DNA of 64,000 bases, taken from Mytilus edulis. Taxonomy: Eukaryota. The stretch covers positions 23,870,001 through 23,934,000 of the forward strand of contig NC_092353.1 of assembly GCF_963676685.1 (NCBI RefSeq), in the 5' to 3' direction. This document shows, piece by piece, positions 7,278 through 59,300 of the stretch (positions are counted from its first letter, which is position 1; each line of letters opens with the position of its first letter). The notes under the pieces were generated by a model. It did not search any database. It was not told the origin of the DNA and worked only from the letters and a program-made list of their open reading frames with translations. Both the position numbers and the translations under genes were made by a program.

Positions 7278-7335
<58 letters not shown>

Positions 7336-7398
7336 GGACAGACAGACGGACGGACGGACACCAGACATGTGTATACCATATTTGACGGGCATATAAAA
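6660..7398 (+). mobile_element. Pearl/MgE-like (Helentron-associated) non-autonomous element: ~160-bp internal tandem units, (GACA/GACG)n microsatellite and terminal motif
   Basis: Unit GTGTGTAAAGTTTTAAGCAATAATCATAAAT...GAGATACGGCACGACATG recurs at ~6666, ~6824 and ~6988. A microsatellite follows at 7249-7360, then GACGGGCATATAAAAA. The layout matches bivalve pearl-type elements; the family name is inferred. Confidence 0.65.
7249..7360 (+). repeat. (GACA)n/(GACG)n tetranucleotide microsatellite
   Basis: Directly visible. It explains the spurious ORFs 7135-7422 and 7165-7431. Confidence 0.97.
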
Positions 7399-25437: not shown

Positions 25438-28400
25438 ATGAAACTATTAAACAACGTTATATGTAAGTAAATCAATATGTTATTACTTTTATAAAGTGTA
25501 AACGCAGCTTTGAATAATTCAATTTTTTCGATGGAATATAGCAAATCAGAATTGTGACCCTAGTGTTCCAGTAATTATGTTGATTGATATAAAGTCAACT
25601 GTTATGTAAAATATGATTATATCATTTGAAATATAACTATGACATGTGAAATAAGACTAAAATGTCATGTAAAATAATGCCCAAGTAATAAGAAATATGG
25701 ATTTTTCATGTGCTATTGATTAATATTATAAGGCGTTTTGTTTTGTTAGCTTTTTATCTGGTATTAATACATACAGTGATATAAAACTTATATTTTTATC
25801 TTTTTATTTAAAAAAAAAATAATATGTTTTGTTATTTTTCCCCGAGTTAATCATGCGTGTTCTATATTAAACTAACTATAAATTCTTTTTTTTTAAATGA
25901 TACAAAAAAGAGAATTAATGATTCTTCGCCATGAATTATTTAGAATTTAAAATAAATAATTCTTTGTACTTAAATTTGTCAGATTCGAATAAAAGAATGT
26001 ATCAACGATTTTTCTTGTCTTATTGGAAACAAAAATTAAAGTAACTGTATGTAGTTGAATGACACACTTCTTTATATAAATAGTTTCTCTTCTTTGTTTT
26101 ACAACATACATGCACATTGTAGTAATAATCATTTAATGTAGCCAATAAGGTACCTGATAACTCAAGTACTCTTTTAATTTTTTTAACAGGTCTCTGCTTT
26201 TGTTTCATTTGTATCTTTGGACAACAATGTGACGATCTCGATTCTGATGTATGTAAGCGGTTGCATGGCCAGAATCCGAGTCTGTGTGCAGATAGTTGTT
26301 TGTCCAGTATCTGCACTAGATTCTGTGGTCAATGTCGTAAGTTATTTAGGTTATCTTCGTGTACCTCTAATATTACAGTTTTGCGTAAGATACATTGTAT
26401 TTTTTAATAATAAAGGGATTTGGCAGTCATAAGGAAAACAAACAATACATTGAAAGACGAACTAAACAAATAAATCAAGGACACATAACTATGGTTAAAA
26501 GCTCGCATAAATGTCAATTTTATACAATTATGAAATGCAATTTTCAACACAATATTGGCATATGTATACAGGACTTTGTGTATGCATTAAATTGTGCTAA
26601 CTATTATATTATCAGCTCTGACTTGTTATTCCTGTCATGAAGTAGACGATCCTTCTAATTGTACCACCACTGCAGTCTGTCCATCTAAAGATCATGTACG
26701 TACACAACTTTTATTTGAATAAGTAATTAGCCTATGCACGAGGGTTGATGCATCTTTCAGAACCATCTTTTTCCCCAAAACAACCTACACGTTTTAAGTT
26801 ATTAAATTGGCATTTAAAATTATTAAGTTTCTGAAAAAAAGTAAAATAAGAGGAGCGGAGTATAGATATAACGTTTACAAAACATCAGCTGAATAATAGC
26901 ACGCAAGTTTACTGAACATTTAGCTGAAGACTTGTATAAGAATTATGTTACATGTGATACACACTTTAAAGGATTTTGTGTATGTTTTTCCACAAAATAA
27001 AAATCTAAAAGCTAAAACAAATATCAAGCATTTATCACCACCATAAAACATGTTACCAAGCAAATTAAATGTATCATAGATTCCTACTATAATCATTTTT
27101 AGAAGGTTTGTGATATTATGTATGAATATGACACATTCAATTAAAATACAGGTTGGGTAAAACAAACCCAGCCCTTATAACCCTTTTCATTTACTGACAT
27201 ATAAAATCGAAAAGATAAAAAATAATAATAATAATTCTCCAGGCCGTGTACAATGTGTGCTGTTGTACAGTGTTTCATGTTAGTTACATTCGTGTTTTTT
27301 AAAACACGAAATTACTCCATTTATACAGAACATTGCAGATACGGTGGTAAAGTCATGTAAAAAATAAAATTTAATTGAAATATTTTAGTATTGCTTCACA
27401 ACTCAAACCTATACAGATGACTTCCAAGAGGTTTACAAGTTAGGATGTGCAAAGAAATCAGTAAGTAGTGATGTTTATTTATTTACTAGATTTAGAAAAA
27501 TACACAGGGGTAACAAAAGAGACTTATGTATCTTCATTATCGGTTTAAAACTCGCCAAAAAGGAACATGTTTAATTGTTAAAACCATATTTTAGATCACA
27601 AACATTTCAACAGCAGGATATTTAAAAAAAAGTATGAACACTTGTACCAATCTGATTCGTTTAATTTGGGACATAGCATTTTGTTTTATTATCTAAATGA
27701 CGATGCATTTAAATGTTGCCTGTCTGGTCATTCCTGCGTAGTTACTTAGTACCCTGAAAAGTGTACTATGAAAATAGAAGGCAAATTGAAGCAATTTGAT
27801 TGGACGAGAAATTGTAAGTATGTGTTAATGTCATTTAAATTATGGTTGCCTTTCAAAATGTTCATTGGTAACTGTTTGGTTAACCCTGTATATTCTATAC
27901 TTGATTGTTTAAATAATATCTAAATCAGCTGAATTGATCTTTATAAATGCTCTGTATTGATAATATAAAAAACGAAAAATCATACAATTGTGCAGTTAAT
28001 TTCTAGGATGCTTTTAAAATGAAAGCTATTCAGGTTCGGGAATCAATTTTACATTAATATCTAACAAAAGTTTGAATAGCTCTAGAAAAAATCAAGCTCA
28101 GAAGTCGAACAAACCTTGTAACACCTGCATGATTTAGGGCAAAAGGTTATACTATAAAGTATTGACTATCTATAAGTGTATATACGCATATGTTTATTAT
28201 TTTTGGATGCTATGATATCAGACTAGGTTATCTCTATCTTGTTTTAAAATTGTACAATACAGCTATGTGAACAGAATATCAACTCTGGGAAGAGGTCCCA
28301 CCTCGATGTAAATGGAGGCTGTTGTAGTTTTGATCAATGTAATAACATACTTCCAGCATTAATTGATGAGCTAACAGTAACTAGTACTACAGAAATGGTC

Positions 28401-31400
28401 CAGAATACAACAGGTAGGGAATTCAATTTGATAAAAGAAGTGACTGTATATGTTTTAAAAGAGATACAACGTAAATGATAATATGAGATTAAAACAAATA
28501 ATTTACTGTTACATTTCTTAAAGTCTGCAATGGTTTTACACTTGTCATTTTTGGGGCTCTTTATAACTTGCTGTTCGGTGTTGGCCAAGGTTCCGTGTTG
28601 AAGACCGTACTTATATCTATAATGGTTTACTTTTATGAATTGTGACTTGGATTGAGAGTTGTCTTCTTATAACTACTAAAATAAACTATAACAAAAATAT
28701 CATACGTATAACTACTCTTACACTGAATGCACTTTTACAAATTGCGCCTGGTATCTTCTTTATAAAATAAGAGGGTATGGTATGATTTAAAATAAAGTAT
28801 AACTACATGTGTGTATATCAAATTTAAAAGATAATAATATTTTGATTTCAATGACAGATATTTATATTTTTCAGCGTCACCGTCTATACTTAAAGAATGT
28901 AAGAATTTTGATGACGACAGTTGTCTTAGAATATCAATGATTGACCCTTCCTTTTGTACCAATGACTGTATATCATCACAAATATGTCCACGCACATGTA
29001 GAAAATGCTGTAAGTTATTGCTAAATATTTAATTACAACATTTTAACTAAATTTTAGAACTTGGTCAACCGATTCTGTAAGTGTGCATAACGAGTATTTT
29101 TGAAATAAATATCATTGAGTACACACGATATCATAGGTTTAGAAGCTACAGAGATAAAAAAAAAAAAAATAAAAAAAGCTTTTCAGGGTTAACATGAAAT
29201 GAATCCCTATCCGTTTGAGAAAATTTTCTTGCTGTGCATTTTGCGACATCCGCTTCGTTACCAGTCCTATGGTATACGAACTGGTTACAATTAAATGAAT
29301 TATCATATTATGTAATCGTGTTTAAGTTAACGTTATGGATTGTATAGTTCATGTCAATTTTATTTTGCTTTTCAACATAGATAGTTAAATAACAAGTAAA
29401 ATGTATTAAAAGTAAGTGTATGGGGGACAAGATGCCATTTTAATCATCGTTTTGTGTTTGCACAGTATTTATTCTCACCCTTTAAACCAAAGTTTTGATG
29501 TAGAGTATTTTCAAGGGTTAAGTAAATTTTCCTGATTTTTTTTCCAGAATAAGGTTATTCTCTTAGCTGCATGTACTAATAACTTTATTTGTGTTTAGCT
29601 AGACATATAAGTAATTTATATTTTTATTACAGAGAATTCAAAACTGCTATTTTGATAGATTAAGGCAATTGTTTTAAATTATGGAACAAGATATTTAGTG
29701 ATATAAACCACAACACCAATTATATTGGCCCCGATATAAAACAACCTATTATTTTTTTGATACATTGTAATTCATCTTGGTTCTAAATGTACACACTCTC
29801 CGAGAAAAAAATCATAAAAGAAGGGGAACATATAAAATTTGAAGTAATACATGATAACGCAAGTATACAAGTATACAAGTATAAATCGATTATTTGACAT
29901 TTTGATCTAATGGAAATGTGTGAAATTGTTGTTGAAAGGATAAGTCAAATCAGCAAAACAAGCCTGCGTTATTAGTACATGTATCTGTGATTTTTCGTTT
30001 TTATAATTTTAGTTCAATGTTATCAATGTAATGATATCAATAGTCCTGGTGATTGCAACACTACCACAACGTGTGAGTCAGGAAAGGTATATAGTATTGT
30101 TAAATTCAAGTTACATAACAAACTATTATTGTATTAACTTTTGCAGGACAATTACGGTAAAAATATGGATAGAAATTATAAAAAAGATTTTTCGTAAATC
30201 AAAATGTCAGCATTCTTTATTTTATCACCGTCCATTTTCACGACTTGATTTTGTTTTTTTACAGCAAATTGCTGACATTTCTAACCAGTTTAACAATTTG
30301 GTTTTATGAAACCTTTTGCAATTTGATCAGGATTTTCTGCAAAAATTGGTGCGCAACACTTACATTCAAGTTATAGTAATAATTCTACGTAGAGACTACT
30401 GCAATCACGCATCAAAACAAATGTGCACGCGCGTTTTCTCCCCACATAAAGCTCACCAGTGACGCTGTGTAATATTAATAAGGCTTTATCAAGTAGGAAG
30501 TTGAAATCTATAAATTCCGAAAATATGTTTCACATACGGCTAAGGTAAACCCAGGGATAGTAAAGCTTCAGTGCCTCGAATAATACAACATTAACGAATC
30601 GACAAATATACAATATATACCGGTAAATTATATGTTAAAAAAGTGTTTAAGCGCAACAACTCGAATAAACTGTATACAATTGCTTTCTTTCAGGAATGTT
30701 TTCGCCTTCAGACCTTGAGCTTTGATTTAAGACCTGTTTTCAGACTCGGATGTCTTGAAGAAAATGTACGGATATAATATTGCTATTCAATCAATAGCGC
30801 AGAGATCATATTTGTTCCATACATGCTCCGCAATACTATTGGTTTGTTTCTCAAATTCAATTCTAGATATGAAAATGTACAATTTGTAAAATTACAGTTT
30901 TTATGAATATGGTGAGTGAGACGCATGTTTAAGTTACATTTTCACGATGTGCAGTTTTTATGAAGAATATAGTGCTGTAAATTAAAATCACGAAAACTAG
31001 AAACATAGTTTTCCTATATTGAACTGATCAAAGTAAGATATATAGTAGGTGCTTACAGTAGTGTTTAGATATTATAGAAAAGAACAAAAATACTGTTTAA
31101 ATTGTGTAAAGAACAGAGCTACAATTTTCAAATACACATAAAAAACAACTCAATGATTCTTTCACCATCATAAATGTCAAAAGTAATTAACAATAGCGTA
31201 TCATGACTTTATCATCTATTAAATTCTTTAATTGCTATAGTTATGTAGCAGATTCAACATGGACCCACTACAATCTGCTTTTGGTCGTAGAGATGTCTCT
31301 CTAATAGGTGGATGTTGTAAAACTGATCTCTGTAATATACAGCGTACTCTACCAACCACTCAAACAACTACACAAAGAGCTTCTCCGGTAACCACAGGCA

Positions 31401-33989
31401 CACCTAGTAGGTGTACTAATAATCATAAGTTTTAATTTGGGACCCAAGTGTAACAGTACTGGAATATATATAGAAATATAGTCATTTTTGTCTGCATGTA
31501 CTAAAAATTTGAGGGGTCCATATTTGACTAAATTCAGGCCAAATCCAATACACTTACCATTATTTTCGTGTGGCATTCAAAATTCCCTATTATACCGTTC
31601 TTGTCTCGTTTCCAGACTTACCTATATAAAATTCTAACTGGAAAGTTCCTTTATACAATGGAATATAGCTCAACCACACCAAACAAATGGAAAACAACTG
31701 TCGTTTTTCTGACTTGGTACAGGCACATTCCCTTTTGTGGAATTCATTGCTTATGTGCTCTATTCATGAATATAAATATAATATTTACCACTGGACTAAT
31801 CCTTTTTTTCAAGTTCTTGATTTTTATCTGCCCATAACATTATATTAAAATTTAATATTACTTTAAATACGTTATGCATTAATAGGCTCATCATCTTTAC
31901 CACTCTAAAAACAATAACGCCAAATGTGCGTTTACTCTACAAAAAAATCATCAGTGACGCTTAAAATCCAAAGTTTAAAAAAATAAAGTAATAGCTTTAA
32001 GAATAAAAAGACCTGATATTCAAAAGGTTTTGTCAATCACAGCTAACATTAGTATTCTCGGGTTAAATAATGCTTGGTATATTTTGAAAATTTAAGTTTT
32101 GTAAACAATTATTATATAATTATGACCATGTCAATAATAATTCATGTCAACACAGAAGTGTTGAATACTGAACTATCAGATACATTATTTATAAAAATAA
32201 CGTGCAGAATGATCATCAAACATGATTTAAGAATATTTTTTCTTTCAATCGTAGCCTGTAGGCCTATGTTGATAGGAGATTGTCCGATTGGATTTGTTAG
32301 AAGAGCTGATAGCTGCTACTACATCAGTCGTAGCCATAGAATACAATCAGCGGCACATGTAAGTTTTGGCATAAACACAACCATTGGTGAGATGTTTCTT
32401 AAAGAAAAACATGGAACAATATACATTAAATGTAATATAACAATTGTTCTCAAAGTATACATTGACGTCTTTATCTAAACCTGGTATTAGAATGTCTATC
32501 TAGTACAGGAAACTGTGATTTCTGTTTTTAAAGCATTTAAATTTGTAGGACCTTAATCAATGACTTGTTAGATTACGATGATCTGATTTAACAACCGTAA
32601 AAAATTTCAGAATTTTATACTATTTTTTCGTACACATAGAAATCTGTATATAAGAAGACAGGGGTCAACGCACGGTAAACTGATAGCCTTGTTTAAAAAA
32701 TCTTTTGATCTATTAATATAAACACTTAAGAAAGGGCAAATGTTTTTGGCAAACACATTGGACATTCAGGAATATAACTATCAAGGAACTGATCAAAACA
32801 CAGTCTGAAACAGTGTGAACATAACTCTGTGCTTTTACATTTACTTTGCTAACAGAAAAACTCTATTACTTATTATTTTTTTGCAGGAAGAATGTGCTTC
32901 TTATTGTACTCGACTGGTGATTATAAGTAGTGAAGTAGAAAATAAGGAAATTACTGACTTCTTACACCAAAGTAAACAGATAGTTGGAATAAATGAAGGT
33001 AAATAACACGATGTCCCTTATCAAACATTTACAATTTTTAAGATTTTTTAATTAATCTTTATTTAATGTATTTGTATGGAACGATCGCGTATAGAGCGTA
33101 TACAAAAACATCTGTTTTGTTAAGAAGAAGAGGAATACATATGAATCAACCATTGTAGGATCTTCTCCTGATCATTCATTTTAAAATTGTTAAACGAAAT
33201 TGAACTATACGTATTAGTTTCTCTAATTGGTATGCATAACTGTTTAAAAATTATACTATGATTTAAGTTTTCCAAATACAATTTTAATCATAATATCAAT
33301 CCCCTTTGATAGCTAAATTTGAAATTTTATAATGCTCGACAAGCTTATTTTGAACTATAATAATTCGCTATCTATTGATAAATCTCGTAGTCAAGAGGAA
33401 ATATAAGTACATACTAACTGATAAGAAATAAGGTGAAATAAAGTACAAAGTTTCCATATGGACAATACAAAAAAAAACAAGAACAGACACCCTCATATTT
33501 AAGAAGCAATTATTACTGTGGTGTTTTACACAACAAACGAAATTGAATCAATACGTACTTTATCTTATAAAAGATTCTAAACATAATGCTTAGATAACAA
33601 ACAAACTAACAAAGCAAGTTTTTCTCTGTAGATGATTGGCGAATACATTATAATATGTTTAAACATTTATCAAAGCCTGGAAATAAAATGCATCAAATAC
33701 CTGATCAATTGTAGAGTCTAGATACTGGATCGATGCTTACAGAAGCGATTCAAACTTTGATGGTACTTGGGTATGGAATAGTACAGGCACCGTAATCAAT
33801 GACCACACTTATTCTCATTGGAGACCTGGATCTCACATTAATTATAATGCTGACGGAGAACATTGTGCCGATATAGGGAGAGGAGAGTCTTCTAATATTG
33901 AGACTACCAATGGATATTTTTGGGACCATGGGAGTTGTCTACATAGACTTTTGCCATTATGTGAATACCCTTTAGGAAAAAGTCCATGA
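25438..33989 (+). CDS. Gene 1 of the ShKT/three-finger/C-type-lectin cluster: SP-ShKT-LU-ShKT-LU-CTLD, secreted, 470 aa
   Basis: 12 GT-AG exons: 25438-25462 (MKLLNNVI); 26190-26336 (rest of SP plus ShKT CDDLDSDVCKRLHGQNPSLCADSCLSSICTRFCGQC); 26616-26695, 27389-27460 and 28263-28413 (LU1, LTCYSC...GGCCSFDQCNN, 10 Cys); 28875-29009 (ShKT2); 30013-30086, 30694-30765 and 31241-31406 (LU2, FQCYQC...GGCCKTDLCN); 32255-32358, 32887-32998 and 33715-33989 (CTLD, CPIGF..CYY..EC..YWID..WVW..HCA..WDHGSC..PLCE, TGA). 1413 nt, phases consistent, exon sizes shared with paralogs. Confidence 0.9.
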
Positions 33990-36985: not shown

Positions 36986-37107
36986 ATAAGTCTGTAATGA
37001 ATGTATTCATTTACCTGCATTTAATATTAATTACAACTCTGTAATACAGAAAATATCTACAAATTACCTAACGTTGCAGTAATTGTCTTACAACCTAAGT
37101 TGAATGA

Positions 37108-39164: not shown

Positions 39165-42100
39165 ATGAAGTTCATATTAATATTTCTATGTAAGTTTTAT
39201 ATAATGATATATTTAGATCTACGGTTACTAATATAGGTTTCACGAGCCTGTTCCGCCTACCTCGCACTAATCAATGCTGTGTAATTAAGTAATTAGGGCA
39301 AGATCATCCAAACGATCGTATAAAAAAAAATACAGGCGACATCATTACTTGATTGACCTTTAGGCAATATGTGTGTCACAGGTGACCATGTGTATGTCGT
39401 AATTGTCTATGAAACTCCATTCGTGCTACTAGGTATACAACTATCAATGTTTGCATATCGGGAAAATATTGTTTGAGGCTTTGCCTGGTGAAAAATCATC
39501 CTATTTGTTTTGAAGAGTGAATATATACAGCCTTGGGCATATATAAAATGTAATCATTGTACTTCTATGTTGTAGATGCATGCCCAAACATCTATGATTC
39601 ATTTCAGATAAAGTGCCCAGTTTTGGTTCATCTGGCTCGCGTATTATCCATTTGTGGCATAATCCTGAAATTCACTCAGCAGGAACATGAAGGACTTTAA
39701 CTTTAATTTTGAATATGTCCGTAAAGAAAATATTGTTTTGCCTGCATTAAAGGATGTAAGCATTGCTTAAACCATATGTAATAAAATTAAAAAAAAGCAA
39801 AGAAGGGGGTTTGCATTATATGGATAAATTTAGAGGAACCTGAAAATTTGACAAAAAGTTAAAAACAAACTAGAGGCTCCACAGAGCCTGTATAGTTCAC
39901 CTTGGTCTATCTGAATACTAAAAAAAACACGAACCCATCACAAACTGGGGTGTTCTCTGGTGCTCTTCAAGGGTAGGCAGATTCTGCTCCACATGTTGCA
40001 CCTGTCGTGTTGCTCATGTTATTTCAAACCCGATAAATGGACTAGTTCGGAAGGTCACATTCATGAAATTGGAAGGGGGTTGTAGTTACGACATACAAAG
40101 CATATCGAATATCAACTGTGAAACGGTAACGGTCATTCAACTCGTAATGTCGTCCGTAAAATTTACGAATGGATGATTTCAACTTCACCATTTCGAAATA
40201 TTGGTTTAATAGCTTCCTTGTGAGCAGCAACCCTATATTAAGGAAATCATGATAGGACATACAAGCGCGGGAATATCTTATCAATTGGGAGATATATATC
40301 CGTATGTAGGTGCTGCTTGAATGTTGCTACATAAAAATGGAAAGTTCACAATTGGGAAGCTGAAATCATCTCTTTTGTCGTAATATTTTGTTTTAAACCG
40401 ACCAGCATTGTCAGTTTCTGGATGTAAGTCAAGAAAGGAGGCAGACTTATTTGTATCTGTTGTATCCTTTATCTCCATTTCAATGGGGTAGATACGTTCA
40501 ACATAGTCACGAAATTTTTAATTATTTAGTGAGAGAACACATCTATTCAACGGAAATAATAGTTGAAGGATGTTGTTAACTTTTTATAGTTCTTCCGTAG
40601 AAGTTCCTGTATGAAGCCAGCTCATAATAATAAAGAAACAAGTCAGCATGAAGAGGGGCACAATCGGTTCCCATTGGAACGCCAAAATTCTGGTGAAAAA
40701 CACGTCCTCCAAACGTATCAAATATGTTGTCAATCAAGAAATGAAGAATCTTGATAATGTTATTTTTAGACAATTGTTTGTTTGAATCAGAGTAATTCTT
40801 TTTTATAATTTTAGAATTAGGAGTCGATTGTCGATTTCGACATTACAAACGTATTTGTAGTACTTGTCTTCCTGATAATTTTTCTGTTTTAATGTTTATA
40901 TGCAGTATGTAGTTTTCAAGATAAAAATAAAAAAATAAAAAAAAAATAGTTAAAATTTGTCATCAAATTGAAATAACTGCTACAAGAAGTCGTCTGTCAA
41001 TTTTGATTGAAATGTAGTCAGTATGTAGAGCCGTAGAACATTGTTTTTGCCAGGTTACCCTGTTAGACATAATAGACAAAACTTGCATTCTTTTTTGAAA
41101 ATGTTTGTAAACGTTAACGGACGACGACGACGGACGACAAGTGATGCGAAAAGCTTACTTGGCCCATTGAGGCCCATTGAGCCAGATTATCTAAAAAGAC
41201 AAGTGAACATCTCAAAAATATATAAATATACAAATTTACATCTATCAGAACCGCAGTGCAATGAAATACATGTATCAGTTCCTATAGGATACAAAGTAGT
41301 ATTCATTAAACATGAAACAAATAAACACGAAGTTATAACGAAATATATAAACAAAACTAATACACAAAATAAAAAATAAGCAAAAGCAACAAACTACACA
41401 AATCAACTTTGTAACAACTTTGTTATCCTTTAAACAATATATTTTGCATTTCTAAATTAGAAACAGAATGAATTCTGACATTGTTAGAAGTCAATCGAAT
41501 CTTTTTTTAAAGGCAAAGAAAAGAGGATCATATGTAAATGAATCTTATTTGAAAAAAGGTGATACGTTAATTTCAGTTGACCTTAACAAAACTGAAAAAG
41601 GGTATTATGAAACGTACAAATACATTTCCATTATTTTTTTTATTAATATTATACATATTATAGATTAATACCAAATTGTTTCCCATATGACGATGCTGTG
41701 AGGTTAAGCTGTCGTATTATCTATGTCTCCTTTTTAAAAATGTGTTTGATTTGTTTCAAGATTAATAGCAATAGAAGTATATATTGGTACGCACGTCTGG
41801 CGTACTAATTTATAATCCTAGTACTTTTGATAACTATTATGATTGATTGCCGTTAATAATTCTAACATTATAAGTAAATCTATACATTTTCGCCGTTACA
41901 ATATAACTGAAAATAATAAACCCAATAAAACAATTAATGCTTAAACTCAATTATAATTTCAGCATTTGCTTTGCTTTTCTGTATTTTTAGCACTTAGTGT
42001 TTACATCTTGGGCACACAAGCTCAGTCATGTAACGATCTAGATACTGAAGTATGTAAGAAGTTATCAGCCTTGAATCCAAATATGTGCGCTGATGGCTGT

Positions 42101-45100
42101 CTGTCTAGCATTTGTTCTAGATTTTGTGGACGATGTCGTAAGTTATGTTCTTTTTAAAGAAAATGAATAATTTGTTTCAAATTTGGGAAGATAAATAATA
42201 AGATGTAGTGTCGACAGACAATTTCGAGTAAAAAGTTTTAATGTAAATAAAATGTAAAAACTTTTGATTGATTAAAGCTCATTTCGATTTCATATTTTTC
42301 TTTTCGAATATAGACCCATTCTTTTACCTAAACAACGAAAAAAAGATAACTTTTATTTCTGTTTTTATTTTCAGCATTATCATGCTATTTCTGCCACCAA
42401 ATAGATAATCCAGCCAATTGCACTACTGCACTTGAATGTCCAACTACTGACCATGTAAGTTCATTCATTAAAGAGGTTTTTTTTCACTGTAATTCATCGC
42501 TGCATATGTCTGGTAAAGGCATCCAAAATTTGAATTATCTTTTAGCACATTTGGTTTTTTAACTACTTTTTTTTTTATAGTATTTACCACTCATCTGACT
42601 TGTTAGAATTTTAAGGATGTATATTCCAACATGAAAAACAACTGGCATGTCAGTAACTGCTAGTAGTCCTTTGCTAGTTTATGTATCATTTTGCTTATTT
42701 TCTTTTGTTTCCAATTCTGATATCGCTCGAACAATTTTACACTGAGTTTTACTGTGCGTATTGCTATGTGTTTCTTCATTTTTCATTGGATAGAGGTATA
42801 GAGGAGGGTTGATATCTCACAAAACAGGTTGTCAGAGGTCAAAACCTCCTGACTTGGAACACCCACAGAAATGCGGCTTGTCCCTAGTTAGGAGCCTCTG
42901 ACCTTTGTTAGTCTTGTATATTTATTTAATTTTATTCATTTATATGTTTTGGAGTTTACTCACATCCATTTTCACTGAACTAGTACACAATTGTATACCA
43001 CTACCAGCTGAGGACATCCTCTGTATGCCGGATTTTCTCGCTGCATTGCAGACCCATTGTTGGCCTTCGACCGTTGTCTGCTTCTTGGTCGGGATGTTGT
43101 ATCTTTGACATATTCCTCCTTTTCATTCTCAATATTATTAATGTTGTCTACTATTGATGGACTAAGTTATAAACAAAGATGTCTTTCAGAGTGCATTATA
43201 TATTTGTTTGTGTCACATTGATACATGCCTCCACATGTCATTTTTATTATTATTTTGTAGTACTGTTTTACATCTCAAACGTTTACAGACGATTTCCATG
43301 AGGTATACACAATGGGATGTGCTATGAAAAATGTAAGTTAGTGTAATAAAGAACTCAATTATTCAACTTTTCTAAATAGCGGTATAGAGTGATAGCATTT
43401 TATATCAAGGATACATGAACCTTACATTACATTAATCTGAAAATATTATTGTTTTAAAAATGTCTTACATGAGATATGATTTATTAAATGTCGGATAATT
43501 TCTAATTAACTGTAAGGATGAAACATAACAAATCTAGATATAACGAAATTTTTGAATATTTTAATCTCTTATTTAACTCTATTTATATAAAGTACAAAGA
43601 TTAAGGATAAAAGCAGAAGACAAAAATCAATGATTATGAAAAAAAAACCTTTCGATGATTAACGCTATGCTTCATGTGCAAAGCAAATCTTTAAAGATAT
43701 TTTGTTTTAGCGCTAAACATAAATAACACAATCATGTTTTTTGCTTTTTGCTTTCTCATTTCTAAAAAAGCGAATGGGAGAAATGAAATATATAAATTGC
43801 TTTTTTCATTTCTTATAGCTTTGTGAACGAAATGTTAATAATGGAAGGCGGTCAGATCTTAGTGTTAAAGGTGGATGTTGCAATATCGACAAATGTAACA
43901 ATATACTGCCGTCGCAGATAGATCTACTACAACAGAGGACCACTGTTATGGTTCAAAATACTACAGGTATTTGGAATGTGTAACGATGAAAAGATAATTG
44001 TTACCTATGTATATTATTGATAATGTCTTAACTTTAGAGGAAGACATATTCTAGATAATTTTATCTGCGTATTACAATTTGAAGTCGATTTACGCATTTC
44101 TTCAACCATACAAAAATGTGTATACAAAGATAATTATATCAAAAAGTGCAGTGGAAGCGTTGATAAGTTGTGGTTTAAAATTGAAACGCGTCTGACGTAT
44201 CAAATTGTACGCCTGGTACTTTTGATAACTATTTTCATTTGGTTATCATATCCGAAATGTAGAATAACATTAACAACTGTTTTATACACCAACTTGCCTG
44301 CTTTTCTTTTTCTTTTTCTTTGATGTTCTCGTTGTAGTTTAAACTCTTATGATATATCTGAAAATATACGATGAACCATTTCACTCATTATTATAGCAAC
44401 TGTCAATTAGTTGTTCGCCTTTCTTTAACAGTTCCTCCGTCCTATAGCGTCTGTAAAAATATGGATGATGATGTGTGTCTTAGAATTTCATTGACTGATC
44501 CAGCATTCTGTAGTAATGACTGTATAGCTTCTGTTATCTGTCCACGCATGTGTAGAAAATGCTGTAAGTAATATAATGTTATTATGTATCTATACGTTGT
44601 TGTTATTTTAACAAAACCGTCAGGAACACTTCCAACAAACACAGATAAAGAAAGAACAAAAATAACATAAATCTTACAGTTTTACTTATTGTTGATTTTA
44701 AGATATGATGCGAGTAAACGTCATACAAGTGAGAGGTTTACCTAGCTTTAAAACCAGATTGGGTTAATCAACAATTATTTAAATAAGAAAATGCCTGTAC
44801 CAAGTCAGGAACATGACAATTGTCTTCCATGTGTTTGATATATTTGAGCTTTTTATTTGGCTATTTGATTATGAACTTTCCGTTTAAATTTTCCACATAG
44901 TTCAGTTTTTTTGTGCTTTTACTTTTTAAATAAACTTAATCTAAAAGGTTATCAAATCAACACTGTAACAACATCTTTGAATATTTTGTTCATTGGTAGA
45001 AATAATGACTTTGTTATTAAATTATAAACCATACTACATATTATTGTTATAATCATATTTATTTTCACGGTAAAACTATATTTTGGCATTGCACGGGTTA

Positions 45101-47117
45101 TATATTGTTCTCTTACTTTGAATTACTTATACATCTGTCCACTTAATCCATTGTATGTTGGATGGTTACAGATTGATATTTTACTCTTAGATCAATGTTT
45201 TACTAGTCGTTATTGGCTTACAACAAGCTTTGATTACACTCATATCTGTACTCTGTGTCTTTTTATTATTATGAGCGAAGTATAAATACCATGCCATGTC
45301 TGGCGGATATTTTTCTGCTTTGTATCGATTTGATGATGTGCCTGTCCCTAATCAAGAGCATTTAGTTAAGTGGTTGTCGTTTGTTCATGTCTGTCATATA
45401 TGTTTTTCTCGTAAATTGGTATGTTATAAATTATTCTGTTTGCTCTCTTAATCGAAATGTTTCACACCAGTACTCAAAACCCTCCTTCCTTGATAGGTGC
45501 ATTTAACATAGACAAATAAAGTCGTATAATATAATCAAAATGAGGATGTTAATTTGATATATGCCTTTTTGTGCTTCTTCGTTACATTTGTTGTTTTTAT
45601 AGTGATTAAGATGATAACACAATGTTGACTGCTGTACCCCTATTTTTGACATTTTTAACTATTGTTTCTGTTTGTTTTGTTCACGCATCGGTGACAATAT
45701 AATGGAATGTGATACGACTGTCATACAAGTGAGAGGTTTAGCTAGCTATAAAACCAGGTTCAATCCATCATTTTCTACATTTGAAAATGCCTGTACCAAG
45801 TCAGGAATATGACAGTTCTTGTCCATTCGTTTTTGATGCGTTTTGTCATTTGATTTTGCCATGTGATTATGGACTTTCCGAATTGATTTTCCTCTGAGTT
45901 CAGTATTTTTGTGATTTTACTTTTTTGTTTCATATTTATCATGTCTGGGCCTTTTATATTCTAATGTGATACTGATCGGGAGCTTGACATGTGACATTGA
46001 GAGTAAGACATTATGCACTGTGTTCTTTGGACAGAAAATCTTGTGACATGTATATGTTTTGCTTACTGGGTTTTGCTAATGTATTTACATGCTCTCAGTT
46101 TTAAAATTTTTGTTACGTGTATACATACGAAGGTTGCACAGTAAACGTTCTAACGTTTTAACTAAACGAACTAGTCTTATTAGCGGGTGTGTGATTATAT
46201 GAACAACACGACGGGCCACACATGGAACACTACCGCTCAAAACCTGCGATCACCCAGTTTTTTTGTTGTGATTTGTGTTTTTCGTTTTCTCTGTTTGGTT
46301 TTGTGCTTATTTTATAAAATTTGTTTGTATGTTAGCCGTTGTTATTTTTTTTTTGTACATGACTTCATTTTTTGTACGACTTATGAGTTAACTTTAAAAT
46401 CGTTAGCCTTTCTTTTTCATTTGTACATAATTTTTCAGTTCAGTGTTACAGCTGCAATGATATAAATCGGCCTGAGGACTGTAATAGTACTTCGACATGC
46501 GAGTCAGGAAAGGTAAACATTAAGATATATCACTAAAGCTGCATTGAAACAACAACTATACAACCGTAAAAAAATCAACAGACAACTCTATACAACACTT
46601 ACAATTTTCAAAATGTGCTGACATTGATTTCGTTAATTATCAATATATATATACTTTTTCTAAAAATGAGGGTACTTCTTATATGGCCTTCCGAATACCG
46701 TTTCGATCCCTAACATCACTGAAGAGACATTTATTGTCGAAATCCGGATCTGGTGTACTAAATAAATATTGACACCGTATGTTTGTGGCATAACATCGTG
46801 GCCACAAGTTAATTTTTATCTGTTTAGTATTAAATTTATATTAAGATTCATTTTGTTACACCTTTTGATCAATTTTATTTGGCAATCGCCAATGGCATGC
46901 AGCAGGGTTAAAGAACATCAGTTGTTCGACCTGTAAGTCAAATGCGTTTTGTTTAAATATACTTTTTTCACTTTTTTGGTCTTTTGGAAAATGTTGTTTG
47001 TGCTGTTTTTAGACCCTTCTACAACGATTTGTTTACATGCACATGTATAAAAATTGCGGTTTTTATCCAACGCAATCATAGGTTTGAACGTAGTTTTCAA
47101 TTTAGACTCGTTTATAT

Positions 47118-47152
<35 letters not shown>

Positions 47153-50100
47153 GAGGGAAGAACCAAAAATTTGCGAAAGCAAATTTACAGATCTAACATT
47201 GTTGGGTTGATGTTTAGACGAGTTGTATATATATATATATATATAAATGTTACAGGCATTTTGAAAAATGCCTGAAAGTTTAAAGCATTTTCAAAATTGC
47301 CTCTAAGATTCAGTCATTATACATAATGACTAATTTTTCTAGGCATTTTACAAAATGCCTGGAAAAATTAAAAGGCATTTTTTGAGGCGTTTTGTTATTT
47401 GAAAAATTGTTATTTTGAAAAATTAAAAGGCATTTTATGATGCGTTTTGTTATTTGATTTTGCCATGTGATTATGGACTTTCCCAATTGATCTTCCTCTA
47501 AGTTCAGTATTTTTGTGATTTTACTTTTTACAAAATGCCTGAAATTATTTTAAAGAATGAAATATTAAAATAAAAACAATTGAAAGCTTTGAACACCAGA
47601 TCAGTTGTATTTATGATACTTATTACTGAACTAAAAAGAAGACTTTAAATAATCAAGAATAAACTTTACTGAATACCAACGTCATGTGATACTTATAGTT
47701 TGCTATTTTACACAGTTGTACGTCTGTAGGAGTCAGCTCTGTTACAATCAGTGATATTTAAACAAGGTTTTTTTCGTACACATCTTTAGGACATTTGGCC
47801 TACATTTTAATCTGAAATTATTGGAGTTACGTCTTGCGTGTTACCCTTACATCTAAAATGTAGAATGTAGGTAGAAAAGAACCGTAACTTTCTAGAAGAC
47901 ATAATTAGTTTTTACCTAATTTAACACTTGAGAGTTTATGATTGACCTTTGTTGTTTTTTTGTGGTTCAAACCTAAATGAGACAATAATATTTTAAGATG
48001 TATTTAAAGGGTAGCAGGTAATTTCGTACCTTGACAATTAAGCACCTCTGCCATTTTATACCCCAAATTACCATTTCGTACCTAACATTTACCATTTCGT
48101 ACCCCTGATGAAAACCATTTCGTAAATCATTAGCCTTATATATTTGGTTACTTTTTTATACATTTTTTTCTGTATTGATAAAATCCAAAAGATTGGCGAG
48201 TTATATAAGTCTTCGTTGCAGATATCTTTATCTCACAGACCCTTTTTGCATAATTAATTGTTCAGCAGTCTAAATGATGTTAAAATTTATATTATACAGG
48301 AATGCTTCCAGCTAGAAACACTTAGTTTTGATCTTCGTCCTGTCTATAGATTAGGATGTCTTGACGAGAGTGTAAGTTTGATTTTCTGTTTCAAATAACA
48401 AAAAGGAATAAATAAGAAAAGAAGTATTTTTTAAATTATCTTAATTTAACAAAGATAAATAAATTCAGTGTTTTTAGATAAGAAAATAAAGAAGCGGTAC
48501 TACATACGTATATATATTGCATTCCTCCTGTGGTGTATTTGTTGTTGTTGTTATTTGCATAATGAATAACTTAAGTGGAAAGTTACGTATACATGTTGTT
48601 TATTTTGATAGGCTTCTTATGATTTAAACGCACTTTTTCATCAACAGCTTTGTAAACGGTTCGGTGTGAACCCGGCACAATCAGGCTTTGGACGTCGACA
48701 AACAAGCCTGTCACTGAAAGGAGGGTGCTGTAGGACTGATCTTTGTAATATCAGAATTCCTAGGATTCCTAAGATTATCAATGCCCCTCCATCAACTATC
48801 ACTGCATCCACCGCACCACAACCTGTTAAAATAAGTCCAACAACAAGTATGTGTTAAAAATTTACAACGCTTATATATTACCCTGTTCAGTGACAATAAA
48901 CAAACTGAGACGTATGCACCAATCAGATAATGTGTTTGCCTGGTTGACATGATTTTAGACAAGATTGTTATTTTTATTAGTTTGTTAAAATAAGTATTTG
49001 AGTATAGACCTTTTTGATGGTAGGTATTTTTACTGTATTTGTATTTAAGTATTTGCAAGGAGGAAGTTTTATGTTTTTTCTCTTTAATTTGCTTTAATTA
49101 CACTTTTGCATGTACAGCGCCATAGAGTAGTTTTTATCTTTTTCAAATAGTGCGTTTTGTAGATTTTCATTATCATTTTATAAGTATAACAACCAAACTA
49201 CAAGGGAACACAAAAGCATCTGGAGATAAACATAATGTCTTCATGGCTTCTAAAGTTTGAACCCTCTTTTAGTAAATCTCTTTCTAAACATAAACACAAA
49301 GTACACACACAAAAAAAAAAAAGACAATAAAAGACAAATTGCAAAGGTAGCTGACAAACATAATGAATAGTATTGATTCTAGGATTGCAGTCTCTTACTG
49401 AAAAAAGTTTTATTCACTGAACATGGCATAAAACGATGGTGTTACATAATCGGGAATTGTATTCTTATATTATCGGTCCTTCCTTTATATGCCTTTATAG
49501 AATCACATGGTTTGATGACGTCAAATATGCTTGACTCTGTCTTGAATATTTTGACCTAAGCGTCACTGATGAGTTGTATGTGGACGAAATGCGCGTCTAG
49601 CGTACTAAATTATAATCCTGGTACCTTGGAGAACTATTTACAAGTTTGACCTGGAGTAAGATTAGAAGTATAGATTATCTGGTTTACTACACATTGATAA
49701 CGTAAAATATCAGCCGCGAAATATCGCAACATAAAGTAACACCTATTGACAAAAAAACTAGATATTTTGATGTTGTTAGTGAAAAATAATGTACAAATAT
49801 CTACTAAATAGATTGTAAATAAATAGCAAATGCGTTAATAAAAACCAGTCTCATCCCGAATATGTATGGCTGATTTTTATCCTGATATTTTACCACTCTA
49901 ATATTGAAGACAACTTTCTACATGTTCTGATGATGTTTGATATATCTTTCAGATTGTGCAACACCACATGCTGACACCCACCACCACGGTTGTCCTCCTG
50001 ACTACACATACGTCACTCATGAACGTGCGTGTTTTCATATAGGCAATAATCTATTAACCTGGCAGCAAGCCGATGTATGTTATAAACCTCAATAGTTTTT

Positions 50101-51708
50101 TTTTTATTAATATCATAAAAGTTAAAAAATGGGTTTAAGTTAATGATTCATCAACCCTATTACATAATACGATCAAAGTACATGAGAAAATTGCATGTCG
50201 CCAACAATATGTTAGTATCATATACATATGAATATAAACAGATAGAGTCCACGTGCAATCGATTTTATTAAGGTGTGGTTGATTTCAAACTGTAGGTAAA
50301 AAAGTATGTTTATCGTCGTTTTTATAACCAGCTGTGTAATGATTTTGTAGTGGATCGAATCATTATTGTTCTGTTAATTGCCGAATACATAACCAATCTC
50401 CAGTTAAAGGGTTAATTTTGAGGTCACTTGAATACAGATTTAATGAAGTCGGATTAATCGCTTGCAAGTAAATGTGTTGTTTTTTTTTTTATCTTATTTT
50501 GACAAAACTGACGCTAATTGACTGCTAATAGTGAATTAGTATGTCACCTTCATTAATGATTGAACAAATAAAATCCTTTTTGTTTTCTTTATTTCTCGTT
50601 GCTAATGCCACTTTAAATCTCGAATAAACTTATTAATGATTGTTCCTCTACTACTAAACTCAAACGGGGTATTTGCAGGGGATATACGTACATTATTATG
50701 TATTGTTCGTGGAAAAATTAAAATCACAAAAATACTCAACTCTGAGTAAAATTCAAAACGGAAAGTCCTTAATCAAATGGCAAAATCAAAAGCTGAAGCA
50801 CATCAAACAAATGGAAGACAAATACATCTCTTCATCCCTTTTTGTCCATTTATAGAGTTACTGCAAAAATAAATGTGGAAAACTTGCCGATTTTAGTTCT
50901 AGTACTGAAATACTTGATGTCATGAGCCATGTGAAATCAACATTTCATAGTGAGTATGAAAATATTTTTTTTAAAATTAAATGTGTAGTAACACAAGCAC
51001 AAATTTAACCTAAAGATGATACATTGGATTAAATAAAGGATTTTAACACAAAGTCTTGTTAATCATATATAAACATGCAAAAGGGGAGGCGGTTAACCTT
51101 TTGCTGATGTCACCAATGCCATTCGCAGGAACCCTTGATTCACAGCGTAATGAAAATACAATCTAAAGAATAAAAAGAATAAACATACAAGTGTTCTTGA
51201 TATCATATGATATATTATATGGTCCATTTTCCCATTAAAACGAATTCGTGTATAGACTAATGATTTGACTGATGATTAGTTATATATGTCATATATCATA
51301 TATCATTAATATATCACTTCATAATTGAAATGCCTATTCTTCATTTTCGGTATAGAGTAAAATCATTGATTAAATATTCATTATTCATGAGTTACGAGCT
51401 AACAACATCGTTTTGATATACACTTTAAAACATGTCCCCCAAAACTGCAAATAGCTTTTGGTAAGAAGAAATTAGCATTACATTTTCCCTTTTTTATAGA
51501 CATTGATTTATGGATTGGTGCAGCTAAAGATAGCCATGGTAACTGGATATGGACGGACAAAAATCAGAAAATAAGTCTGACCCACAGCTCCTATCTTACT
51601 CATCTACATGGATCATGTGGCGCTGCTCACAATTCTCGCGCTGTTTCTTTGATTCCACACTTCTGTACCACACAACTCCATCCCTTATGTGAAGCTCATC
51701 GTCAATAA
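39165..51708 (+). CDS. Gene 2 of the cluster: SP-ShKT-LU-ShKT-LU-CTLD (His-rich lectin domain), secreted, 457 aa
   Basis: 12 exons: 39165-39189 (MKFILIFL), 41991-42137, 42375-42454, 43261-43332, 43819-43966, 44432-44563, 46439-46512, 48300-48371, 48648-48846, 49953-50074, 50856-50949, 51500-51708 (LWIGA..WIW..GSCGA..FC..PLCEAHRQ-TAA). 1374 nt, open frame, same phases as gene 1. Exon sizes 25/147/80/72/74/72 are identical to gene 1. Confidence 0.9.
39866..41197 (+). mobile_element. Pearl-like element ends bracketing a nested Penelope-like fragment, in intron 1 of gene 2
   Basis: 5' end AAACTAGAGGCTCCACAGAGCCTGT (hairpin) at ~39866. 3' end (GAC)n-GGACGACAAGTGATGCGAAAAGCTTACTTGGCCC...CTAAAAA at ~41120-41197. 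Confidence 0.5.
39925..40800 (-). mobile_element. Decayed Penelope-like retroelement: RT C-terminal half and 3' tail
   Basis: Frameshifted pieces FLIDNIFDTFGGRVFHQNFGVPMGTDCAPLHADLFLYYYE; EIKDTTDTNKSASFLDL...YDKRDDFSFPIVNFPFLCSNI; IRYSRACMSY...LKSSIRKFYGRH. Confidence 0.85.
45547..45926 (+). repeat. Most complete copy of interspersed repeat R1 (ends GAGTTCAGTATTTTTGTGATTTTACTTTTT)
   Basis: More than 10 full or partial copies in the window, e.g. ~5843-6000(-), 14776-15135(-), 22435-22800(+), 23095-23460(+), 37798-37940(-), 44705-44927(+), 47440-47529(+), 50715-50820(-), 52761-52880(-), 54676-54870(-). Confidence 0.9.
46713..46756 (+). ncRNA. Minimal type I hammerhead ribozyme (R4 repeat ~46665-47115), sense orientation in intron 7 of gene 2
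   Basis: ACAUCA-CUGAAGA-GAC(auuuauu)GUC-GAA-AUCCGGAU-C-UGGUGU. All stems pair and the loop-III region is a perfect palindrome. Predicted cleavage is after C46750. Confidence 0.9.
47113..47149. repeat. (TA)n microsatellite
   Basis: Directly visible; a second run lies at 47226-47244. Confidence 0.95.
49560..49603 (+). ncRNA. Hammerhead ribozyme, slightly decayed, sense in intron 9 of gene 2
   Basis: GCGUCA-CUGAUGA-GUU(guaugug)GAC-GAA-AUGCGCGU-C-UAGCGU. The core is intact; stem I has one mismatch. Confidence 0.7.
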
Positions 51709-52554: not shown

Positions 52555-52647
52555 GCTATTATTTGAACTTGGAATTGTTTTTAATTATGGAATTTGCATA
52601 ATTTCCTGTGCTTGAAATTTTTAATAAATTCCAGTTCAAATAATAGC
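52555..52647. repeat. Imperfect palindrome upstream of gene 3
   Basis: GCTATTATTTGAACTTGGAATT pairs with AATTCCAGTTCAAATAATAGC. Confidence 0.7.
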
Positions 52648-56300: not shown

Positions 56301-59300
56301 GATACGTTACTCTAGAGCTAGCTCAAAGTACGTTGATTTAGTTGAACGAGGAATACTGCTTTCTCAAAAGTTGTTAAGACAGGGCTATGAATCAATCAAA
56401 TGAAGGTCATCATTCAGGAAATTTTACGGTCGCCATCATGAGCTGATTGGCCATTATGACAAAAGTGTGTCAAAGAAATAACACGACGGGTGCCGTATAT
56501 GGTGCAGGAAATGCTTACCCTTCCGGAGCACCTGATTTCACACTTGGTTTTTAGTGGAGTTCGTGTTGTTTCTTATTTATTATTTATAACTGTTGATGTA
56601 AATGTCGTTTGGTTTAATGAGTCTTTGTTTACTCCTTGGTTTTGATTGTTATTGTCTTGTAATGAAGACATATTGGACTGAAATTTAATGTTATTATTTT
56701 GTTGACATTATTCTCTCGCATTTCAGTATTGTTTCACATCAGAAACATTTGCCGACGATTTTACGAAAGTATATAAAATGGGATGTGCACTAAAAAATGT
56801 AAGTTTTAAATTTATTTTATTTAGCATGTTCTAATTGAAACTTCCATATTCTAGTACATGTATGTAATAGCTTATTGTATGTACAATAAACATGTTTTAC
56901 CTTCACAGTGCAGCACATGTGCATGCTTTTTTGTGTTTAGTGTTCAGCTATTTCTCAGACTGTACTCACTTAATTTGAAATTAAATATACAATATTGCTA
57001 TTGTATATTTCGAGACAATTGAGACTAGGGGGTGTGAGGCTCATCTAATTTATATTACTATTGTAGGAATACAAAGCAAAAGTGAGCACACACTCGTCAC
57101 CGAACTTATTTAGGTCGAAAAGCGATTTATATACGTAAGACAAATCTCCAAACATTTACAGAACTGTCCAACCATCAAATTGTTTCATTTCAGACTTGTG
57201 TACTAAATGTCAATGGTGGTAGAAGGTCAGATGTTGTTGTAAAAGGTGCATGTTGCGGCATTGACAAATGCAACAATAATTTACCAGATGAAATTGATCG
57301 AATAGTAGATTTACAGCAACAAAAGATATCAGAGCTGTCACAAAGTAAAAGTAACTCATCATTTGTTTTGCAACATAAAGATATAAGAAGATGTGGTATG
57401 GGTGCCATTGACACAACTCTCCATCCAAGTCACAATTTGTAAAGATAAACCCTCACAGGTCAAAGTACGAACTTCACACTGGAGCCTAACAGCAAGCTAT
57501 CAAGGGTCCCAAAATGACTATTTTAAAACGATGCAAACAGGAAGAGCAACGATCTTATAAAAAAAAAAACGAGAAACGAGAAACATTACGAACCACATCA
57601 ACAAACCACAACCACTGAACAAAAGGTTCCTGACTTAAGAAAGGTGCAAACAAACACCGTGGGTTAAAACATAAATGTATTAGGTATAGTTGAAACTGAT
57701 TGGTTTAAAATTACAGCATTTTAATGGTTGACTAAGTTATTTTGATTTGTAGTAATTTTTACCTCTCCCGTCCGGTAATAAACCATGTACGGAACAGAGT
57801 TGTCCAGACCCCTTGTTGGTTTTGAAGGAGGCATAGTAACGCAACTATGTTCGATATGAAAGGCACGTCGAATTATCCTCCGTCTAAATACCGTCCGATT
57901 TCAATTATCAAATGTGTTGGTATAGGTAGCAATAAACAGTTAGGAGAAAAAATTTTCCCTCTTAAATTTTACCATCCCCTTTTCATTGCTTTCTTGCAAT
58001 ATTAAGCTTACTGTTTGTTTCATATATGTGCATATGTATGTAATCAGAATCTTCCATAGATATTAAATGCACTATATAAAATGGTAAAATATCATTTCAT
58101 TTAGGTGTATCCATGGCAACAGTCTGCATTTATTTGTTATAAAATATTGCAAAAAGGGGGGGAAAGATGTCACATATTTCCCCAAAATTTGGCTAAAAGT
58201 AGAATTACAATTGCTTAAAGTCATACGTTTTCTGAATTTTTTTACATATATCTTTCAATAAATCCAATGAAAATCATATGTCTTTCATCTCATTTTTTTT
58301 TTTGTAAAATTGCGTCAAAAGCTTTGTGTAGAAAAAAACTGTTTGTAAACATTACATTAATTTCTGGAACGATGGCCGGTCTAGCTATGAAAATACGGAG
58401 AGTCAAACAGAAAACAGCCCATAAAACAAGTATAAAATAATCTTGATGTTCTTATAAACCATCTTTGAAGGCTAAATTAGTAATTAATTTTAATACACAA
58501 TAACTTCCATATTTGGTGAAAAATCCACCGAGGCCAAAATGCGAAACTAGACTCCTAACTGTGTATTGCTACCATAGTCACTCACAAAATCTACTATAAA
58601 ACAAAAAAAATATATATAATTAAAAGATCGCATCAAATAAGAGAATGATGTATAATCAATTAGCAGGCGAATAGCAAAACCGATTCTTGTTTTCCATAAG
58701 TTAGTAACTCAATAATGTACCAAAAAGCATAACATTTTATAAGCAAGATTTGTCTTATTGTTACAGATAATATTACATCACACATGTCTGATTGCTTTGA
58801 TACGATTCCTAACTGCAAAGAGTACAAAACAATTGTATGTGGACAATATGCCCTCTGGTCACAGGAGAATTGCGCTCGCTTCTGTAATATGTGTGGTAGG
58901 TATATTAAGACATTATATGTAAAAACGCGACAATATCCAAATGACAACATCAATTATACGGTAACATATTGTTATGTGGATATTAATATTTTCCATTATT
59001 TAGTTACGTTTGTACTTTCCATGTCAACAGTCCCGTTATACATGTATCTCCAGTAAACGGTTATGTGTTACTTACAATGACATATGAATATATGTATAAG
59101 TTTAATCTTGGTTAACTGACTCTATTGTCTATACAAAGCGCATAACATGCATGGATCCTCTTTTTTATAGACTTCTTCATGTTTTCAGGAATCGATATAT
59201 TTTTGTCTTCTAATTTGTGGAGTTTGAGTGTTATTGACCAAGTCCAATTCAAAATAACGGTCAGGGCGGGACGTATCAGATGTAAAAAAAAAATTTAATT

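Follow-up and report, generated by a model that had tools for sequence, protein, structure and literature searches.

A conserved basic motif in finger 3 of tandem Ly6/uPAR domains from Mytilus edulis and other bivalves: a candidate processing site

Introduction

The 64,000 nucleotides analysed here (Mytilus edulis, assembly GCF_963676685.1, contig NC_092353.1, positions 23,870,001 to 23,934,000 of the forward strand; the whole stretch is called the window and positions are counted from its first letter) carry three tandem Mytilus paralogs, the third of which extends past the window end. Their architecture consists of a signal peptide, two successive units of a seven-cysteine ShKT-like module followed by a Ly6/uPAR (LU) three-finger domain, a Thr/Pro-rich, mucin-like linker and a C-type lectin. 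A Gly-[Lys/Arg]-Arg (G-[KR]-R) motif was found in finger 3 of every LU domain whose last exon lies in the window, and the question raised by this locus is what such a motif does within a folded domain.

Few small folds of animals are reused as widely as the LU domain, which occurs in CD59, uPAR and Lynx as well as in snake toxins. If the motif were a cleavage site it would represent a new layer of post-translational control for this fold, and even if uncleaved, a conserved Arg-containing motif in both LU domains of these proteins would mark a functional hot spot. The family to which the genes belong is present in dozens of copies per mussel genome and combines two toxin-type folds with a lectin.

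The motif in the window

Direct reading of the window found G-[KR]-R encoded by all five LU exon 3 sequences, with exactly the coordinates and codons that had been given for it in the preliminary description. In gene 1, it occurs as G-K-R in the first LU domain, LU-A (28287-28295, plus strand; GGG AAG AGG; NINS-GKR-SHLDV), and as G-R-R in the second, LU-B (31283-31291, plus strand; GGT CGT AGA; QSAF-GRR-DVSLI), both being in frame within RNA-confirmed exons. The three other copies, likewise on the plus strand and all G-R-R, were read directly in LU-A of gene 2 (43843-43851; GGA AGG CGG; NVNN-GRR-SDLSV), LU-B of gene 2 (48690-48698; GGA CGT CGA; QSGF-GRR-QTSLS) and LU-A of gene 3 (57218-57226; GGT AGA AGG; NVNG-GRR-SDVVV). 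The codons are thus different in each loop. A six-frame scan with the pattern CC-x(3-6)-C[ND] returned exactly five LU C-terminal exons in the window, all on the plus strand. A sixth copy of the motif (GFGRRQ) is present in LU-B exon 3 of gene 3 (locus L006), 782 bases beyond the window end. The motif codons of gene 1 were unaltered in the RNA contigs of three runs, with a nearby difference at 31282 (T>C) being a synonymous change of a Phe codon.

An AG immediately precedes each of the five exons, the second codon encodes Cys7, and the motif lies between Cys7 and the CC pair of the LU signature C...CC-x4-CN, which is carried by all five. The Cys spacing of LU-A of gene 1 (C-x2-C-x8-C-x5-C-x6-C-x17-C-x5-C-x17-CC-x4-CN) matches that of CD59, and the spacing of LU-B is equivalent. 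In CD59 the corresponding loop is closed by the Cys7-Cys8 disulfide.

The exons fall into two types, type A (NINSGKR, NVNNGRR and NVNGGRR) and type B (QSAFGRR and QSGFGRR), with an identity of only 35-38% between them. Nine columns are invariant over the five exons: the first and last residues of the motif (G and R), four Cys, a Gly, an Asp and an Asn. The five copies are paralogs and hence not independent draws. All five loops have Arg at the position that would precede a cut (P1) and Lys or Arg at P2, as expected of a convertase site, and Gly stands directly before the basic run in all five as well as in the sixth loop just outside.

Conservation across bivalves

To further investigate the distribution of the motif, a profile built from the five exons was run against the mussel's own genome, giving 49 matches on contigs C10, C11, C6 and others, and a 26-exon profile was run against 1.84 billion representative proteins, giving 47 matches at E <= 0.001. 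The full-length matches agree in architecture, and every one of them is annotated as uncharacterised; the database proteins with identical loops are from Mytilus edulis and M. galloprovincialis. Members of the family were found in five Mytilus species, Ostrea edulis, Crassostrea (Magallana), Saccostrea, Mizuhopecten, Argopecten and Pecten, spanning three orders of pteriomorph bivalves (Mytilida, Ostreida and Pectinida). A survey of invertebrate LU proteins from 2026 (PMC13719153) does not include this architecture. On these sequences the family is bivalve-specific, predicted to be secreted and as yet undescribed.

Database proteins and genomic paralogs were pooled to give 80 distinct finger-3 loops. 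As the search profile included the motif, a slight retrieval bias attaches to this set, with the second LU domain of each match having been taken irrespective of the profile match. A basic run ending in Arg was present in 69 of the 80 loops, in both LU domains and in mussels, oysters and scallops alike. The last residue of the run is always Arg and never Lys, with no run ending in KK or RK, while Lys and Arg replace each other freely at P2 (of the 54 database loops that have the pair, 34 carry K and 20 carry R). Nine loops have widened runs (RKR, KKR, RKKR, RRKKR or RKRR), mostly preceded by Gly, the exceptions being the RKR of P0011 and the KKR of P0019, and in three long loops there are two basic sites, separated by 5-10 residues (TRR...PKR in an oyster, GRR...DRR in a scallop and IRR...PR in a Mytilus protein). 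After the run (P1'), about 85% of loops have S, Q, D, A, N or G, mostly one of the first four, and P, C and bulky aromatics do not occur. Within the same proteins, the density of [KR]R is 4.1% in finger-3 loops versus 0.21% elsewhere, an enrichment of about 20-fold. The distance from the basic run to the CC pair ranges from 5 to 17 residues and the length of the loop varies too. Chance or paralog inertia was considered as an explanation and ruled out, the motif persisting over three bivalve orders amid changing flanks and loop length.

The preliminary description had taken the Gly and the basic pair to be conserved together. Among the orthologs and paralogs the pair was kept in the 69 loops mentioned, and Gly was kept before it in only 44 of these, the remainder having N, V, S, M, T, D, I, H, A or P. 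What appears in the window as G-[KR]-R is the local version of a linear motif of the whole family, written (often Gly)-[KR]n-Arg, in finger 3 of both LU domains. Judged from the sequences, this motif is real, ancient and tolerant of position, with a strict terminal Arg, and it lies in a loop predicted to be closed by the Cys7-Cys8 disulfide.

It should also be noted that two oyster proteins have a polybasic site in the linker that directly follows the CN of LU-A, SKKKRQ or SKKRQ (P0010 of Ostrea edulis, residues 160-167, and P0023 of Saccostrea cucullata, residues 142-149), which could be an inter-domain processing site.

Domain assignment and loop structure

Single exons from the window were too short for Pfam, with weak CD59 (E = 0.013) and ShK matches only, and the domain tests were made with full-length database orthologs in place of single exons. 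Orthologs P0006, P0003, P0017 and P0055 matched UPAR_LY6 (PF00021) with 26.2-39.2 bits (cut-off 24.8) and Toxin_TOLIP (PF00087) with 29.3-38.7 bits (cut-off 21.2). A Foldseek search with the 502-residue model was dominated by the lectin domain and was repeated with the lectin-free model of P0004, which matched uPAR, C4.4A, Lynx2, PSCA, CD59, GPIHBP1 and erabutoxin; for single-domain matches the target template modelling (TM) score was 0.64-0.74, indicating a three-finger fold. The lectin itself was recognised in P0003 by Lectin_C (PF00059; 26.6 bits, cut-off 22.6), by sequence matches in the PDB to snake C-type lectins and mincle, and by Foldseek matches to LOX-1, CLEC9A and NKR-P1 (target TM 0.75-0.85). 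PDB sequence searches returned no solved LU protein aligned over the motif, only lectins or the CC...CN tails of toxins; the best PDB match, ZapD, was rejected as a chance match to GGCC. A search of the mussel's own genome with PF00021 for unrelated LU exon 3 controls gave ten weak matches, mostly to exon 1 and to the same family.

The mussel domains resemble the Ly6/uPAR proteins CD59, PSCA, Lynx2 and uPAR in their ten-Cys pattern, CD59-like spacing and CCxxDxCN tail. They differ from these in being duplicated, each preceded by a seven-Cys module and the pair followed by the mucin-like linker and the C-type lectin.

Two relatives were modelled with AlphaFold2 from family alignments, namely P0006, the M. 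trossulus ortholog of gene 3, and P0004 of M. edulis. The LU domains of P0006 had a predicted local distance difference test (pLDDT) of 80-90, with values below 50 only at residues 116-120 (GGRRS) and 314-326 (VNPVQSGFGRRQQ). Those of P0004 exceeded 90, with segment 256-267 (SVTDVFGKRQSF) below 50 and with the LU-A loop dipping to 66-74 around TKR versus 91-94 in its flanks. The motif is therefore below 50 in three of the four modelled loops and at a dip in the fourth, low confidence being a proxy for flexibility only. Cys7 leads in both models into a short helix, as in CD59, which gives way to a coil bearing the motif and then to a short strand that ends in the CC pair. The motif is thus not placed at the tip of a beta-hairpin. 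Since its distance to the CC pair varies, the loop varies in length and the confidence is low, the motif is better regarded as linear than as a fixed three-dimensional position. Its behaviour in the models is that of a short linear motif within a flexible, presumably exposed loop and unlike that of a packed structural Arg.

Possible role of the motif

The strict Arg at P1, the Lys or Arg at P2, the polybasic widening, the paired sites within one loop, the polar residues at P1' and the enrichment of Gly are all in line with selection by an Arg-specific secretory protease. The enrichment of [KR]R in the loops, its conservation over mussels, oysters and scallops and the linear, position-tolerant character of the motif count in the same direction, and S, Q, D, A, N and G at P1' fit the known preferences of cleaved dibasic sites. 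The conserved basic pair is a good candidate for a protease-processing site, and a convertase-type nick, with the two chains held by the Cys7-Cys8 disulfide, is favoured here as the leading, if tentative, reading. According to this proposal, an Arg-specific secretory endoprotease of the proprotein-convertase type would recognise the motif and cut finger 3 behind the basic run. With the Cys7-Cys8 disulfide spanning the cut, the chains would stay tethered and each LU domain would come to consist of two chains. Where Gly precedes the run, as in all window loops, it would next be exposed by carboxypeptidase trimming, and amidation may be possible at these loops as an optional extra outside the conserved purpose of the motif.

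Nicking of a loop in the secretory pathway with the chains remaining together is familiar from insulin-type precursors, integrin alpha chains, Notch S1 and crotapotin. The folds of these are unrelated to that of the mussel domains, and most use R-X-[KR]-R or paired sites flanking an excised peptide. Closer to hand, and outside neurons, several secreted effectors of mussel gill and hemocytes (gill myticalins, big defensins and CRP-I) have been read as convertase substrates at KR or RR (PMC12294457). The mussel loops resemble FMRFamide-type precursors and the Mytilus myticalins in having a hydrophobic residue followed by Gly-[KR]-Arg, with KR and RR alternating, a sequence of the form X-Gly-Lys/Arg-Arg being read as convertase cleavage, then carboxypeptidase trimming, then amidation by PAM (PMC12294457). 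However, the sites in those precursors lie in unstructured pro-regions and release free peptides, whereas the mussel site belongs to a loop that a disulfide closes within a folded domain, and a peptide would be set free only by cuts at two sites. A similar distinction applies to the three-finger toxins of colubrid snakes, which are matured by furin-like enzymes at dibasic or tetrabasic propeptide sites (PMC12390062); there the cut removes an N-terminal propeptide outside the three-finger core, unlike the mussel motif, which lies within a loop.

A more extended form of the proposal is that in pteriomorph bivalves finger 3 of each LU domain would serve as a built-in processing site, being nicked, trimmed and, where Gly precedes, amidated by PAM, with a short peptide lost from loops with two sites. 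In its entirety this is considered unlikely. If true, it would provide new amidated C-termini, a Phe-amide inside LU-B being one example, and these would be the first three-finger domains composed of several chains tethered by disulfides, with a possible role as a switch arming a secreted lectin.

A number of observations weigh against nicking. The dibasic pair is missing from 11 of the 80 loops, five of which keep a single Arg (TR, YR, FR or SR), and one Mytilus subfamily has Val at P1' (TKR-V, DKR-V and YR-V), which is unfavourable for convertases. Outside finger 3 there is no depletion of [KR]R in the family proteins, with 18 seen versus 19.2 expected; a shortage there would have hinted at selection against stray convertase sites. 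The low pLDDT of the loops may derive in part from poor alignment of segments of variable length. Internal cleavage is not known to us for any LU domain. A furin-type Arg at P4 is absent from all five window sites, where P4 is S, F, N, F and G, and is present only in relatives with RKKR, RRKKR or RKRR runs, so that cutting in the window proteins would need PC1/3- or PC2-like enzymes or another protease. A literature search that included oyster and scallop locus names found no mention of these proteins. Finally, Arg33, Lys35 and Arg36 of alpha-cobratoxin, which are basic residues used in binding, lie at the tip of a finger where the toxin remains uncut (PMC12390062).

This last comparison leads to the strongest of the other explanations, that the motif is an uncleaved basic recognition epitope, an exposed [KR]-R with Gly providing flexibility, which would become ordered on binding a common partner. 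Receptors, ion channels and anionic surfaces (sulfated glycans or microbial phosphate, for instance) are candidates for such a partner. The loops of LU proteins are their binding surfaces, and the nearest folds to the mussel domains, those of PSCA, Lynx2, CD59, GPIHBP1 and the short neurotoxins, are all binding modules. In alpha-cobratoxin and the long-chain alpha-neurotoxins, which have the same fold, the basic residues of an exposed finger are a functional determinant, the three loop II residues named above binding the receptor; R33E costs 339-767-fold, K35A 11-fold and R36A 7-16-fold (PMC12390062). The Val at P1' in one subfamily and the lone Arg kept when P2 is lost (TR, YR, FR, SR or PR) would fit a key binding Arg, and the lack of depletion of dibasic pairs elsewhere in the proteins is also in keeping with an epitope. 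However, the cluster of alpha-cobratoxin is in the rigid hairpin of finger 2 and binds nicotinic receptors, whereas the mussel motif is in a flexible, variable coil of finger 3. A purely electrostatic site should accept a terminal Lys and no loop has one. The position of the motif floats in loops of differing length, and the motif is identical in the two diverged LU types and in dozens of paralogs whose other surfaces have diverged. Duplicated sites in one loop and polybasic widening would also be unexpected for a shaped epitope. An uncleaved epitope is considered only slightly less likely than the nick.

The model put forward in the preliminary description went further than a nick, with every loop cut, trimmed and amidated (...S-NH2 or ...F-NH2) and the Gly kept for amidation. 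The Gly found before every run in the window and before 44 of the 69 runs of the family, far above background, would suit this model. The type B loops, which are the most regular of the family, are usually [IVA]-F-G-[KR]-R, the classic signature of a Phe-amide precursor, and Gly-KR has been read as an amidation signal in mussel myticalins (PMC12294457). Yet Gly is replaced in 25 of the 69 loops, and in the M. coruscus ortholog of gene 3 (P0008) its place is taken by Ala (NGAKRSD versus NGGRRSD in the window); therefore amidation cannot be the conserved or general purpose of the motif, and the claim that it is did not survive the comparison of orthologs. Gly is moreover the commonest residue in flexible turns, and amidation presupposes a cleavage that is itself putative. 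The full model is judged improbable, and amidation confined to the Gly-bearing loops, which would be a subset of the nicking case, is rated unlikely as well.

A structural role was also considered, in which Gly would form a turn and the Arg would cap or salt-bridge the LU core, for example through the invariant Asp of CCxxDxCN. The Arg is invariant, Gly is common in turns, and the strand that follows has an alternating hydrophobic pattern and ends in G-G-CC. A packed Arg should, however, be modelled confidently, and the motif sits at confidence dips in both models. The range of distances to the CC pair is also difficult to reconcile with a packed residue, and other LU families hold the same Asp without such an Arg. 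This role is considered very improbable. That the loop is a protease bait in the manner of the reactive-site loops of Kunitz or Kazal inhibitors, its P1 Arg blocking Arg-specific proteases, can hardly be credited: the loop is disulfide-closed and exposed, its P1 residue is strictly Arg, and canonical inhibitors likewise stay disulfide-tethered once nicked, but canonical loops are rigid and of fixed length whereas the mussel loop is variable and modelled with low confidence, and we know of no canonical inhibitor with an LU fold.

Gene models and neighbouring features

The window is AT-rich animal DNA (approximately 31% GC) and free of N stretches. The splicing of gene 1 was determined from RNA contigs of three independent runs, with GT..AG introns. 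Its body (26190-31406, plus strand) consists of RNA-confirmed exons, with the lectin exons following from approximately 32255. The first half comprises 26190-26336 (the end of the signal peptide and a seven-Cys module), 26616-26695, 27389-27460 and 28263-28413, the last being LU-A exon 3, which encodes Cys7-Cys10 and a linker and is bounded by the RNA joints 27460>28263 and 28413>28875 in three runs. The second half comprises 28875-29009 (the second ShKT-like module), 30013-30086, 30694-30765 and 31241-31406, the last being LU-B exon 3 with the Thr/Pro-rich linker (RNA joint 30765>31241). A loose end of the RNA past 31406 continues into C-type-lectin exon sequence near 32255. When concatenated, the RNA-supported exons form one open frame that runs from the end of the signal peptide through the seven-Cys module, LU-A, a linker, the second seven-Cys module and LU-B to the Thr/Pro-rich linker.

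Tblastn searches with the individual exon peptides of gene 1, together with checks for flanking AG and GT, served to map the exons of genes 2 and 3 one at a time. The body of gene 2 (41963-48846, plus strand) has exons at 41963-42137, 42375-42454, 43261-43332 and 43819-43966 in its first half and at 44432-44563, 46439-46512, 48300-48371 and 48648-48846 in its second, with lectin exons at approximately 49934-51705. Of these, 43819-43966 is LU-A exon 3, which has AG/GT flanks and is 64% identical to its gene 1 counterpart, and 48648-48846 is LU-B exon 3 with a Pro/Thr linker, assigned by its AG/GT flanks and homology.

The part of gene 3 within the window (53986-63233, plus strand; ortholog P0006) consists of exons 53986-54132, 54577-54656, 56727-56798, 57194-57344, 62128-62262 and 63160-63233. 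LU-A exon 3 (57194-57344) has AG/GT flanks and matches residues 109-159 of P0006. Exons 2 and 3 of LU-B are both outside the window, exon 3 being at the window-equivalent positions 64782-64934. In LU-A exon 1 (54577-54656), Cys2 is replaced by Ser (CYYS versus CYxC), as it is in P0006 of M. trossulus, and its usual partner Cys3 would be left unpaired. The gene is represented in the M. edulis RefSeq annotation by two models, XP_071133744/5 (220-222 amino acids) and XP_071133746 (278 amino acids), while the counterparts in M. trossulus and M. galloprovincialis are single proteins of 502-507 amino acids; the two models are likely an annotation split.

The modules preceding the LU domains were located at 26222-26335, 28892-29008, 42023-42136, 44434-44562, 53997-54131 and 62151-62261, with the pattern C-x7-C-x10-C-x3-C-x4-C-x3-C-x2-C. 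They have seven Cys and no match to Pfam ShK (PF01549), so that they do not qualify as ShK domains in the strict sense. The odd number of Cys suggests an extra disulfide, either between modules or to an LU domain. An additional exon was found only in gene 3 (near 58767-58900, within the stretch 58733-58900), encoding a canonical six-Cys ShK-like domain that is shared with ortholog P0006; it scored 19.9 bits against Pfam ShK (E = 0.0011), under the cut-off of 20.9, and P0006 scored 16.6 bits.

Within an intron of gene 1, the region 28600-28800 showed a summed depth of up to approximately 2,400 in the three contig runs, with 19-34 contigs per run, and was the sole bin with sizeable depth in the raw-read run X21. 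Many loose ends were observed at 28617 and 28664. This region looks like a dispersed repeat present in many transcripts, perhaps a short interspersed nuclear element or a miniature inverted-repeat transposable element, and is outside the gene proper. On the minus strand, a long von Willebrand A-like open frame together with exons of EGF-like Cys pattern was found at 9159-9932 and 12510-13058, belonging to an unrelated neighbouring gene. A tandem repeat at 7138-7462 is open in several minus-strand frames and encodes repeated CLSV/SVRP units.

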